Assembly (NCBI GenBank): GCA_951406725.2
Contig: OX597826.1
Location: forward strand, 75,888,001-75,952,000
Direction: 5' to 3'
DNA length: 64,000 nucleotides
Source: Octopus vulgaris
Taxonomy: Eukaryota
A model generated the notes under the pieces. That model was given only the letters and a program-made list of their open reading frames with translations, was not told where the DNA came from and made no database searches. Shown here in pieces: positions 1,002-48,370 of the stretch (its first letter is position 1; each line of letters begins with the position of its first letter). Position numbers and translations under genes: made by a program.

Positions 1002-2573
1002 ATCTAAAGGATAACAAGAGATATTGTTATAGTAAATAGCCTCATAAGCATTTGAGCAGTTCCTTAAAAAGACATTTGTCTTTATTACAAGGATAAAAGG
1101 ATTAAGTCGATTACATCGACCCCCGAAAAGATGAAAGGCAAAGTCGACCTCGACGGAATTTGAACTCATAACGTAGCGGCAGACGAAATACCGCTAAGCA
1201 TTTCGTCCGGTATGCTAATGTTTCTGCCAGCTCGCCACCTTAAAAAGGCATTACGCACGCGCGCGCACACATACACAATTAATATAGGGTGTCCAAAAAT
1301 TATCTTCACAATTCGAAGAATTCAGAAAAGAATGAAAAACAAGGACAACTCAACAGAACTTATTGGAAAACATAGACAAACAAATAATGCTTTGTCAGAG
1401 ACATCAGAACACTTTTTATGTAGGTTCCATTGGTTGTACGCAAAACATCTCGACGATGAATTGTGGAAGTTGTAAAGATAATTTATGGATACCGTGTGCA
1501 TGTATGTGTGTCTGTCTGTATGTGTATTACATTAAGGATTCTCACTAAAAGACAGATTTTCAAATATAATAAATGGTATTTAATGAATCAGAAGCAATGA
1601 TATTCAAAGAGGAACACGTGTCATGTGTAAACGTTGTTGTTGTTGCTTCCAAGTTCACCGAGTATCTTTAACCAGACGACATCCCATCATTTATCATCTG
1701 CTCTACCTTCAAACAAAACTCCTTGCCCAGCCACCGCCACCACCGTCCTAAGAACAACAAAGAAAACAATGACAGACACATTTGTCAGTTTTGCATTGTT
1801 TTTTTTATTATATCTTGTCTTTATTTCCTTTTCAATCACGTGACTTCCTTGTGTTGACGCCATTATGACAAGGGAGATAACCATTTCTTCATATTTGGCG
1901 GAATTCGAAATTTGAATTTGAAATTAAGGAATTATACAGAAAAAAGTGACAGAGAATTCATATATTTAATTTTATTTTTATTTTTGCAGGGTGTTTTTTT
2001 TATATGTTACTTATCATGTTCTTAAAATGTTTCTTCTCGGTCGTAATCATGTATCTAATTCATTCCTTTCAGAAATCCTTTAAATGCGAGGATCATCATT
2101 TAGCGATTTACCAAAACTATGCCGGAAGACGGAAGTCTTTGATAAATGATTTTTGTACCATTTTTAAAAAGTATAAAAATTCCATTTTAAAATATACATT
2201 TTGGTTTTTTGGGTTTTTTTTATACCGGCCAGTGTGACACTTTCAGACAGCAATTAATCTACGTCGATGGTTTTCAACCATTTTTTACCCGCGGGCCCCT
2301 TCGATTCATATCATTTCACTCTGGTGGCTTCTCAGCAACATCAGGCTTAACCCAAAAAATGTAGTAAAGATTGTTTGCCAACATAACATAGCAGTACTGG
2401 TTTAGGACGAATGTTGCTGTAATTTAGCCCCAAGAGACATCATATATATATATATATATATATATATATATATATATATATATATATATATATATATATA
2501 TATATGTGACCTCGTGAGTACCGCTGGCGATTTTTTTCCTGTCTTCCCTTCTCGAGATCTTTCCTTCTCCTTT

Positions 2574-2608
2574 GTTTCCGACGAAGAGCTCCGCTCGAAA
2601 CGTTAAAC
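2574..2608 (+). ncRNA. Minimal type-I hammerhead-like motif in a ~210-bp (TA)n-flanked repeat (2506-2715)
   Basis: GTTT-CCGACGA-A-GAGC(tcc)GCTC-GAAA-CG-TT-AAAC: stem I GTTT/AAAC, stem II GAGC/GCTC, U4 replaced by C. Confidence 0.6.
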
Positions 2609-3500
2609 CCTCCTTCTTCCCTTCTTTCCTGAGTGTCCAATAATACTTTATTTGTTCCACGTTCTCGCGTTGTTGTGTTTTTTGGTTTTTTGTGTTTTCT
2701 GGTTTGGATTAACTAATATATATATATATATGTATGTATGTATACACACACACACACACACACACACACACACATACACACACACACACACACGTCAATG
2801 GCCTTTCAGTTTCCATCTACCAAGTCCATTCACAAGGTATTGATTGACCCGAAGCTATAGAAGAAGTCACTTGCTCAAGATGTCACGCAGTGGAATTGAA
2901 CCCGGAACCATGTGGTTGGAAAGCAAGCTTCTTACCACACAGTCACGCCTGCGTCTGTATTATTAGGAATTTTATTTTTAAAATATTTTGCGTATTGTAG
3001 AACTATAACCAATTTGTTGCTGATAAATTTTAGTGACAAAATCTTGTATGAATCTCCAAGGATCATGAAAAGCGCAGTGGAGAACCCCTGAACTACATAA
3101 AGAGTTGCATATGTTGTACGGAGTCACTTGGCCTATTAGGATTAGGAACCACATCTCCTTCAAGTCACACCCTACCGTCTTAAACAAAGAAGGCTGCATT
3201 GTATAATGTTGTCCGTTGCGAAGAAAAGAAGATTACTGCTTCAACATTTTGGTATCATACGTCTGTCTGTTCCATCCGATCGTACCGACGGTTAAACTAC
3301 AATATATATATATATATATATATACGTTTAAATATTTGTTGTGCAAGATTTTTTATGTGAAGTCGTGTGTTGAAACAGATATTGTTATATTTCGGAATGG
3401 TCATATTGTCAGTTTAGCCAATAAAAACACACGCACTATATATTTGGTGTTATTTTGCTTCAGTGATATTTATTTTTTACATTAATCTTAATCTTATTTC

Positions 3501-3546
3501 GGCCAGAGTTCTTTCGTCACACTCCTGTGACCGCATCAGTGGTCCT
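3501..3546 (-). ncRNA. Degenerate hammerhead-like motif next to a Penelope GIY-YIG fragment
   Basis: Minus strand GGACCA-CTGATGC-G-GTCACA(ggag)TGTGAC-GAAA-GAAC-TC-TGGCC: perfect 6-bp stem II, A9 substituted. Confidence 0.45.
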
Positions 3547-3877
3547 TTGTTTTCTTCTCACTTATTTGTGTCTCTCCTTACTAACCGTCAGCCATTTTGT
3601 ATTTCTATTGTATGTCTTCATTTGCGCATGCTTATATCTCTATGTGCGTCCATGTTTATTTAGTGTGTGTGTGTGTGAGGGGGGGATGCCTGTAATATTT
3701 GTATCTTCTGTTTATATACATTCATGTAATTTGTATTTTGTTTTTGTTGTTGTTGCTTTTGCTCTAATTTTGTTCATGTGTTTACATCCACCCATTATTA
3801 TCATTACATATGCTTGTATGTATGTATAACAACAATATTAGTAATAATAATAAATCTAATCGAAAAAAAACAACTAT

Positions 3878-47200: not shown

Positions 47201-47502
47201 ATTGTAACATATTATTTTATATATAAATTTCCTCTATTTACATAATATTGAGGTCTCTTTCTTTCTTTTGTTATCTTACCGTTTTTACCAATGTATATAT
47301 ATATATATATATATATATATATATATATATATATATATATTTATATATATATATATATATATATATATATATATATATATATATATATATTATTTACATT
47401 TGACGGATATTTGTTCTCATCTTGTTTGTTGTTAATACAACGTTTCGGCTGATACACCCTCTGGCCTTCGTCGGGTGTCTTGGGGGAAATTCCGCGTAGT
47501 TG

Positions 47503-47720
47503 TTAAGAGCACGGGCTACTAACCCCAAGATTCCGAGTTCGATTCCAGGCAGTGACCTGAATAATAATAATAAAAACAACAACAACAACATCGAAAAATA
47601 CTTTGCGAATGAGAACCTAGGTTCGAAATTTGCCCATTGATGAAGGCTGGAGGGTATATCAGCCGAAACGTTGTGCTTAACAACAAACAAGATGAGGACA
47701 AATATCCGTCAAATGTAAAT
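47503..47720 (+). mobile_element. tRNA-headed SINE-like element with a hammerhead-like tail (copy 1), preceded by an inverted copy of its own 3' half (47394-47497)
   Basis: Head GCGTAGTTGTTAAGAGC...GAGTTCGATTCC; tail TTGATGA-A-GGCTG(gagggtatat)CAGCC-GAAACGTT-GTGCTT. Confidence 0.7.
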
Positions 47721-48283
47721 AATTTAAATAATTCCTCATCTCTTAAATATAGAACTATATATATAAAAGAAATCATTACGATTTAGTTGAATTAGGTACT
47801 TAAGTTAGGGCATCGAGTCTCAGTCCGGTATTATCCACACAGCTCGAAGTAAGGTGAATAAAAAGCAAATAAGTAAGAAGGATGTCAAGGTATCAGCGCA
47901 TTACAACCGTTTCAGACGGTTCCATTTACTCGAACAATGCAAACATTACATCAATTCGGGTGCATGAGACCATATATCAACAGCTAGAACTTAATTGTCA
48001 ATTGCCAGTGGTTTTAATTTTTAGTGGACGTAAGTATACAAGCGGCGTTAGATTTTTGATGGTGATAAGGAGATAGATAAATATAGCCATATTACGATCT
48101 CATGACCGCCATTGTTATTCTCTTCTGCCACTCCAAATTACAGTTGGGGTATTTTCTCCCTAAGTTCATTCTGCTACAAAAATAGCAACAAGCATGTAAT
48201 TCTTTTATTCTCTAGTTCTGATGAAAAATTTGCTAAAAAATTATAATGGAGTATCCTGTATGTTGAAAACCTATATTGTCTTA

Positions 48284-48370
48284 TGCATCCGAAGAAGGCG
48301 ATGTATTTCAAATTGATGTAATGCTTGCGTTGTTCGATTAAATGAAGCTACTTGAAACGGCCGTAATGCA
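48284..48370 (+). ncRNA. Hammerhead-like motif with long stem II and palindromic stem III
   Basis: TGCAT-CCGAAGA-...-GAAAC-GGCC-G-TA-ATGCA: stem I TGCAT/ATGCA, palindrome CGGCCG. An inverted partial copy of the same element lies at ~47860-47970. Confidence 0.45.

Follow-up and report, generated by a model that had tools for sequence, protein, structure and literature searches.

What are the short elements that recur beside microsatellites in a 64,000-nucleotide stretch of Octopus vulgaris contig OX597826.1 (the window; coordinates below count from its first base), and why do they carry a fold that resembles a hammerhead ribozyme with altered core bases? The earlier note had proposed a dense population of 'retrozyme-like or Penelope-pLTR-derived' elements, possibly with non-canonical hammerhead cores. 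We consider it likely that the families here called S, T, U, V and G are non-autonomous retroposons of ~190-270 bp that bear, mid-element, a minimal hammerhead (min-HHR) of the type found in Penelope-like elements (PLEs), that PLEs mobilise them, and that the fold is either non-catalytic or residually cleaving. Judged by sequence features, the set in the window is of the already known PLE min-HHR kind.

PLE min-HHRs, known since 2014, cleave poorly in vitro, and some very successful PLE clades do without them. The elements described here amount to a natural experiment on what such hammerheads do. Sister subfamilies differ at a single core base (U4/C4, A6/U6 or A9/C9) in tens of thousands of copies, and the 'broken' version of the core is the more prolific in each lineage, so that the choice between catalysis and a structural signal becomes directly testable. 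The elements also link a large proportion of the (TA)n microsatellites to the insertion of retroposons, which bears on how microsatellite-rich genomes are shaped.

Dispersed elements built around a small fold

The window is 64 kb of the 2.8-Gb eukaryotic assembly (227 contigs) that was searched; its G+C content is 30-45% and it is microsatellite-rich throughout. Candidate folds were sought with a strict descriptor comprising stem I of at least 4 bp, CNGNNGA, zero or one extra base, stem II of at least 3 bp with a loop of 3-8 nt, GAAA, helix III of 1-4 bp, U, H and the 3' strand of stem I. Five matches were obtained, at 2574-2608(+), 6794-6831(+), 24130-24164(+), 33234-33271(-) and 24453-24487(-), whereas by chance, in 100 dinucleotide-preserving shuffles, hits averaged 0.05 and never exceeded 1; the reversed window sequence gave 0 matches to the same descriptor. 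All five had been claimed as folds before and were recovered to within a base. In every one of them an extra A follows the core, which is CCGACGA in two and CUGUCGA, CUGUAGA or CCGAAGA in the others. Nine related elements were recovered in the window by a profile made from genomic copies. An unfiltered covariance model gave ten motifs at E ≤0.01, namely the five strict folds plus five degraded ones. A truncated S copy, a degraded T copy and three G copies, all placed below, are absent from the first list of sites.

Copy structure was derived from 60 genomic loci of 3 kb and from genome-wide pattern counts. The patterns fix only the hammerhead consensus bases and leave positions 4, 6 and N7, inner stem II, the loops, H17 and stem I free; core frequencies come from 100 listed matches each for S and T. 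Searched in this way, with U4C and A6U allowed, the motif proves common across the genome: the S type (11-nt stem-loop II class) has 19,934 matches compared with 116 for the reversed-pattern control, and the T type (12-nt stem-loop II class) has 31,560 compared with 120. Given that a hammerhead motif occurs about once per 6-10 kb in the window and the sampled loci, the density suggests motif-bearing copies on the order of 100,000 genome-wide.

Family S, reconstructed from 30 loci around matches to its core word GAAGAGCNNNGCUCGAAA (18,034 genomic occurrences, 1 for the reversed control), is a unit of ~215 bp. Its 3' end is fixed (...GUUUGGAUUAACU) and its 5' end preferred (...UUCAAAAUGUGACC...), with a series of 5'-truncated copies that start at profile positions 14, 22, 24, 32, 42, 46, 73 and 82. 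Directly 3' of the end stands a microsatellite, mostly (TA)n and otherwise (CA)n or (CT)n, and many copies have (TA)n on their 5' side too. The (TA)n embedding remarked on earlier is evident in the counts: (TA)4 or more lies within 14 nt of the 3' end in 22 of the 32 copies that retain it complete (69%), compared with 5% of random 14-mers. Two S elements in the window keep the fold. One (2505-2714(+), 48.2 bits) is nearly full length and sits between (TA)n arrays, with its fold at 2574-2608; the other (24056-24263(+), recovered by descriptor, profile and covariance model) is full length, is followed by (TA)n and has its fold at 24130-24164. Both have the core CCGACGA (U4C). A third copy, at 46815-46915(-), was found by the profile; it is 5'-truncated (profile positions 114-214), lacks the hammerhead and is flanked by (TA)n upstream and (CA)n downstream. 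The S motif had no match in a metagenome scan.

The T unit is shorter (~185 bp) and has a plan in common with S, in which a pyrimidine-rich 5' half is followed by the motif and then by CCUGAGCG and UAAUAC blocks; its tail differs from that of S. The T element at 6741-6928(+) (49.9 bits) lies between (TA)n arrays and has its fold at 6794-6831, with core CUGUCGA (A6U). Another, at 33165-33335(-), was recovered by descriptor, profile and covariance model, with its fold at 33234-33271(-) and core CUGUAGA (A6U); across a short microsatellite it stands in tandem with a degraded copy at 33445-33612(-) (13.2 bits) whose motif has decayed. The conserved CCUGAGCG and UAAUAC blocks downstream of the S and T motifs can be seen, for example, at 2626-2650 and 6843-6866, and some copies stop directly after UAAUAC. 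The GAGC in the CCUGAGCG block matches the sequence of the stem II 5' strand, and the U copy with a GAAC/GUUC stem II has GAAC in its place; GAGC could thus offer GCUC an alternative pairing partner.

U and V are more distant than T, with U a diverged relative of S. Two U copies stand tail-to-tail across a (TGTA)n array, at 38599-38791(+) (motif 38657-38693, stems I and II imperfect) and 39283-39445(-) (motif 39342-39378(-), stem II GAAC/GUUC, weak stem I), both with core CCGAUGA. These correspond to folds claimed earlier at ~38661 and ~39338(-): the claim holds in so far as both are diverged relatives by nhmmer (E 1e-10 and 7e-16) and by the covariance model (25.3 and 29.8 bits), but stem I pairs at only two of its four positions. 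Long (TGTA)n and (TG)n-type arrays between and beside the U elements give the interval 38000-42000 a G-over-C skew of 0.34-0.39. The only V copy in the sequence sampled, at 24313-24583(-) (40 bits), has its fold at 24453-24487(-), core CCGAAGA and stem II GGAC/GUUC. Pairs of copies around one microsatellite are common, tail-to-tail in two sampled loci (L006, L028) as in the two U copies, and in tandem in the T elements at 33.2-33.6 kb.

Family G, a separate repeat that follows (AAT)n, combines canonical CUGAUGA and the extra A with GAAACGUU and a stem II of 6 bp (GGCUGG/UCAGCC); immediately 5' of its motif, GGUUCGAAAU resembles a tRNA B box. Two of its three window copies stand head-to-head at 47.4-47.7 kb. 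In the copy at 47382-47492(-) (25.4 bits; motif 47434-47479(-)) the core is CCGACGA and the 6-bp stem II is partly decayed, and in that at 47578-47748(+) (19.9 bits; motif 47638-47672) a 6-base deletion has taken the 5' strand of stem I and the first core base. The third, at 58516-58670(+) (22 bits; motif 58577-58619), retains CUGAUGA, the extra A and a perfect 6-bp stem II, with helix III short of two bases. Further G copies were met at 2101-2290(-) of locus L016 and 1702-1854(-) of L017.

The fold claimed at 48284-48370 falls within a repeat, X, that ends in (TA)n (48220-48430(+); 15.1 bits, E 0.085) and combines CCGAAGA with a very long stem II and ACGGCCGU as helix III. Other copies (window 47858-47956(-) and loci L007, L046 and L055) have the core word CCGAAGA or CUGAAGA, the long hairpin and GAAAC, and stem I covaries (AUGCAG/CUGCAU versus AUGCAU/AUGCA). 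X may thus be a hammerhead relative with a long stem II; its status is uncertain because stem II is not closed by a G10.1-C11.1 pair and because neither the descriptor nor the model (at E 0.01) accepts it. Elsewhere in the genome, family C comprises near-canonical type-I hammerheads that score 30-45 bits (Rfam cut-off 34 bits), are polymorphic for CUGA/CCGA and have CAUGUG or CACGUG in helix III. Open frames upstream of the canonical family C hammerheads encode no reverse transcriptase or endonuclease.

Signs of constraint on the fold and the state of its core

At least six distinct stem II sequences occur among the family representatives, and all are paired: GAGC/GCUC, GAAC/GUUC, GGAC/GUUC, GGCUGG/UCAGCC, GACC(CA)/(UG)GGUC and GUCACA/UGUGAC. 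Stem I likewise takes the forms GUUU/AAAC, AUUU/AAAU, CUUU/AAAG, CUGU/AUAG, ACAC/GUGU, GUAC/GUAC and ACCA/UGGU. In an alignment of 20 sequences 90.3% of cells are paired, compared with 66.6% after shuffling (0 of 500 shuffles as high) and 16-47% when slid, and 38 cells have changed on both sides, compared with 11.2 in shuffles. For 55 model hits, the corresponding values are 88.0% compared with 73.7% (0 of 500) and 15-46%, with 51 cells changed on both sides compared with 13.0. Copies of one family are not independent, and we place most weight on the comparison between families, where the covariation of stem II suspected from the window alone is borne out. Within S, in an unbiased sample, pair 2.4-1.4 occurs as G-C, G-U and A-U (Fisher p 0.005). 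The G10.1-C11.1 pair is kept in 22 of 23 family representatives, and of the 43 distinct sequences among the aligned model hits, 39 show G-C and two G-U at this position.

The hammerhead consensus leaves N7 and H17 free. These are also the most variable of the 23 free positions in the T sample (N7 61% non-consensus, with all four bases represented; H17 26%), and in the S sample both, together with position 4, fall within the top five variable positions. Because variation piles up at N7, H17 and the loops while the stems change by compensation, the pattern suggests that the fold has been constrained in the source copies.

What has changed is the core. All five strict folds in the window depart from the invariant C3 U4 G5 A6 N7 G8 A9, three by U4C and two by A6U. 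Among the 100 S matches listed, the commonest cores are CCGACGA (59), CUGACGA (22) and CUGAAGA (9); U4C accounts for 63%, canonical CUGANGA for 35% and a fully canonical fold for 23%. Among the 100 listed for T, 88 have CUGU[N]GA (N7 = U in 29, A in 24, C in 22 and G in 13), that is, A6U in ~90%, and 4 have canonical CUGAUGA. The PLE described below, PLE-A, has CUGAUGC-G (A9C) in ~85% of its motifs and canonical CUGAUGA-G or CUGAAGA-G in ~12%. Core variants are thus family traits, as had been proposed, and each of S, T and PLE-A also has a canonical-core minority. In S, U4 co-occurs with other diagnostic changes (AAAU in stem I and a different tail) and therefore marks a subfamily rather than scattered decay; an older S subfamily carries U4, and one copy with the tail of the canonical-core subfamily S-b carries C4.

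The rest of the hammerhead is well preserved. Type-I topology, with three helices and an open helix I, is present in the descriptor folds and in the covariation of helices I and II. GAAA, U16.1 and a non-G H17 are kept at 97-98%, and A9 is followed by an unpaired base, A in S, T, U, V and G and G in PLE-A. Helix III has an ACGU palindrome, which by its sequence would allow dimers, in 88% of the S motifs sampled and 77% of those sampled for T. Rfam models report no hammerhead anywhere in the window at the gathering score or at E 10, only microsatellite-driven miRNA noise. Thermodynamic folding of the S consensus is not decisive, since the energies are weak and GACG/CGUU competes as a pairing.

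A probable Penelope connection and competing explanations

A PLE, here called PLE-A, lies in the window itself. Its open frame fragment at 3860-4210(+) encodes a GIY-YIG endonuclease (PF01541, 22.6 bits, at the Pfam cut-off) and is cut off by a (TA)n array. Head-to-head with it stands an inverted, 5'-truncated copy of the PLE-A 3' untranslated region (UTR), at 3332-3867(-), which has 91% identity to the 3'UTR in sampled locus L042. In that locus the C-terminus of the protein (98% identity) is followed by a stop, a 630-nt 3'UTR and then (TA)n. The motif lies ~420 nt past the endonuclease stop and reads GGACCA-CUGAUGC-G-GUCACA-GGAG-UGUGAC-GAAA-GAAC-UC-UGGUC, which gives PLE-A a motif in PLE-terminal location. 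The fold claimed at 3501-3546(-) in the window is the counterpart of this motif. It is real, but it belongs to a separate family, being the 3'UTR motif of PLE-A with core CUGAUGC (A9C). The genome holds 4,283 copies of the PLE-A motif (0 for the control), often as (-,+) twins 130-2800 bp apart. A homologue search with the endonuclease returned two unnamed proteins only; a related endonuclease on an unrelated ENA contig, from another organism, ends in a canonical min-HHR with the extra G and a 6-bp stem II.

Published PLE min-HHRs have a short helix I, an unpaired base between 9 and 10.1 and a G10.1-C11.1 pair, with palindromic 15.2-16.2 or loop 3, taken to allow dimers; they form consensus families rich in compensatory changes, occur as dispersed single copies and opposite-strand pairs and show very low self-cleavage (PMC4209133). 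S, T, U, V, G and PLE-A share every sequence-level feature of this kind. Taken together, the elements described here also have in common with the published ones type-I topology, a helix I of 4-5 bp, a 1-bp helix III with ACGU, thousands of dispersed copies, opposite-strand pairs 100-700 bp apart and occasional core changes. They differ in three respects. Stem II is only 4 bp in S and T, whereas most published examples have 6-8 bp (G and PLE-A have 6); the majority of copies in the big families carry a substituted invariant base (U4C, A6U or A9C); and most copies are discrete elements of ~200 bp with a fixed 5' end, not truncated PLEs. The earlier reading as Penelope-derived is supported, except that the elements are discrete short retroposons rather than just pLTR fossils.

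Naiad PLEs prefer (TA)n as a target, and a linker motif in the Neptune endonuclease has been tied to such a bias (PMC8557442). Our elements resemble Naiad/Chlamys and Neptune in this target, in inverted and tandem insertions, in very high copy numbers of the sort seen in marine invertebrates and in proliferating without a canonical hammerhead; the head-to-head layout of PLE-A in the window is the arrangement drawn for PLEs in the same study (PMC8557442). Naiads have an N-terminal endonuclease, whereas the GIY-YIG domain of PLE-A is C-terminal, with the stop and then the 3'UTR coming after it; S and T encode nothing.

A constant 3' end with variable 5' truncation is characteristic of target-primed reverse transcription and, for the same reason, shows the motif strand to be the RNA strand. 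In our preferred reading, a PLE reverse transcriptase and endonuclease would nick (TA)n and copy S and T RNAs in this way; a (UA)n tail produced by read-through might anneal to the (TA)n target. Because helix III of the monomer is 1 bp, the hammerhead would be active only as a dimer formed through the ACGU palindrome. The commonest lineages each have one invariant base changed (U4C in S, A6U in T, A9C in the PLE) and most likely cleave weakly or not at all; the fold may act as a structural signal, for dimerisation or for recognition by the reverse transcriptase, or may need only residual cleavage.

If the variant cores were catalytically competent, the elements could instead follow the cycle of animal retrozymes, with dimer cleavage through ACGU, circularisation and reverse transcription. 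Animal non-LTR retrozymes are likewise small, non-autonomous, equipped with type-I hammerheads and thought to depend on PLEs, and they form head-to-tail tandem arrays of 170-400-nt monomers and circular RNAs (PMC7229834; 10.64898/2026.07.22.740005). Since some motifs are fully canonical (~23% in S, ~4% in T), active copies may exist. U4C still supports viroid infectivity despite its reduced activity in vitro, and a natural A6C variant cleaves, slowly, at <0.1 per minute (PMC3088659). The fold and its palindromic helix III are well kept, and a few S arrays with periods of 215-219 bp do exist (e.g. G000 C2:134627269-134627515 and C21:8024411-8024873; junction …GGATTAACT-TGATTC-AAAATGTGACC…), which may reflect rolling-circle copying or unequal exchange. 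Counter to this, copies in the window are single or paired across microsatellites, and direct head-to-tail S junctions number only 10 genome-wide among ~20,000 motifs, so that the organisation is not one of retrozyme-like arrays and a retrozyme way of life is marginal at best. Full-length S copies keep ~105 nt upstream of the predicted cleavage site, which indicates that their templates were uncleaved. Nor do 5' ends of S spike at that site: copies starting there beside an A/T-only flank number 61 for S-a, the CCGACGA form (~30 true (TA)n junctions), and 20 for S-b (3-4 junctions), compared with 191 (~28 junctions) for a control block 23 nt downstream, in a crude test whose control also catches C-to-T changed intact copies. 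Cleavage is poor even in those published PLE min-HHRs whose cores are canonical (PMC4209133), and activity is low when A6 is changed (PMC3088659). Since published min-HHRs are weak, position-6 changes harmful and a cleavage footprint lacking, we judge efficient cleavage in the dominant lineages to be unlikely, and a retrozyme cycle seems to us quite improbable. The 'retrozyme-like' half of the earlier proposal does not hold for the organisation of the elements, whereas the Penelope half is supported by the min-HHR features, the (TA)n target and the GIY-YIG PLE.

A harder alternative takes the motif to be an inert passenger inherited from an ancestral PLE tail, conserved in appearance only through the youth of the families. 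Three lineages have each lost a different invariant base and proliferated nonetheless; lineages without canonical hammerheads can be the most prolific, and Naiad PLEs thrive in this way (PMC8557442). Most 35-mers within a family are identical, which implies that the families are young, and the older relatives (U, G and the second T) have decayed stems. Arguing for constraint instead, widely diverged families (S/T, G, C, PLE-A and V) have wholly different stems that still pair around the same junction, T has all four bases at N7 with its neighbours fixed, and compensatory change is seen within S. We regard the passenger explanation as a serious possibility that is nonetheless doubtful. Far less probable is that these are ordinary SINEs driven by LINEs, or TA-targeting MITEs, in which the likeness to a hammerhead is coincidental. 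The elements are short, abundant and non-coding, with no partner element demonstrated, and part of a LINE-type reverse transcriptase (zf-RVT, 49030-49380(-)) is present in the window as well. However, S and T have no tRNA, 5S or 7SL head, no matches to A or B boxes (a B-box reading of GUUCGAAAC was dropped after the box check) and no terminal inverted repeats, the best match of the first 40 bases to the reverse complement of the last 40 being 5 bases in S and 3 in T. ARAGORN finds no tRNA in the window, and no part of S is tRNA-like. Internal T7 runs (two in S) would stop pol III, 5' truncation excludes cut-and-paste transposition, and one core and junction turn up in several families whose stems are unrelated, as well as in a PLE 3'UTR. 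The SINE-like Sm-alpha repeat of Schistosoma (Ferbeyre et al. 1998, cited in PMC4209133) is likewise a short, very abundant retroposon that bears a type-I hammerhead. Sm-alpha is reported to combine a canonical, active hammerhead with a head of pol III type, and S and T show neither of these.

Several points weigh against mobilisation by PLEs with a constrained fold, the reading that we prefer. The paired fractions above are inflated, in that many of the sequences were picked by a descriptor or model that demands pairing, and conservation could simply reflect the youth of the families. About 11% of S belongs to a subfamily with a mismatch inside the 4-bp stem I that was amplified all the same. 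The U4/C4 alternation sits in a CpG, and mutation bias instead of selection may drive it. No Rfam hammerhead model matched S, S-b (with its canonical core) or T at E 10 in searches of ~100 nt. Target-site duplications were not resolved. Neither the 60 sampled loci nor the pattern counts revealed an autonomous PLE whose 5' or 3' ends match those of S or T, and we can only infer a PLE partner for these families because the 3' end of PLE-A is unrelated to theirs.

A bolder idea starts from three independent lineages (S, T and PLE-A) that each replaced a different invariant base and then out-proliferated a canonical sister with the rest of the fold kept. Either the variants would be unrecognised active cores of a dimeric min-HHR, or the fold would have a non-catalytic task in Penelope-type elements, such as recognition by the reverse transcriptase or dimerisation, with self-cleavage selected against during amplification. 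We offer this as speculation and would on the whole not expect it to hold.

Other features of the window

Exon-like stretches of a papain-family cysteine protease (Peptidase_C1) occur at ~32985-33105(+), with the start of the domain (GDCGSSWA...), and at ~44080-44180(+), with its end. Because two such exons are present, most of the window is probably intron, and the retroposons between the protease exons are probably intronic. The C-terminal fragment of a LINE-type reverse transcriptase at 49030-49680(-) gives a weak zf-RVT match (19 bits, below the cut-off). A 35-bp minisatellite at 53240-53460 (6.4 copies of the unit CTGATTATATAATAACATATGTCTGATGAAATGGT) contains CUGAUGA and reaches 9-17 bits with the covariance model, but is no hammerhead.

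A SINE-like repeat (…GCTTGCTTACCAACCACATGGTTC…CCTCGGGCCGACCAAA…) is very abundant, at 4560-4800(+) and 2790-2950(-) and, for example, within 22700-23250, 32030-32480, 34000-34280 and 63380-63720. It is reminiscent of the tRNA-derived SINEs of cephalopods, and it yields the same spurious open frames across the window.

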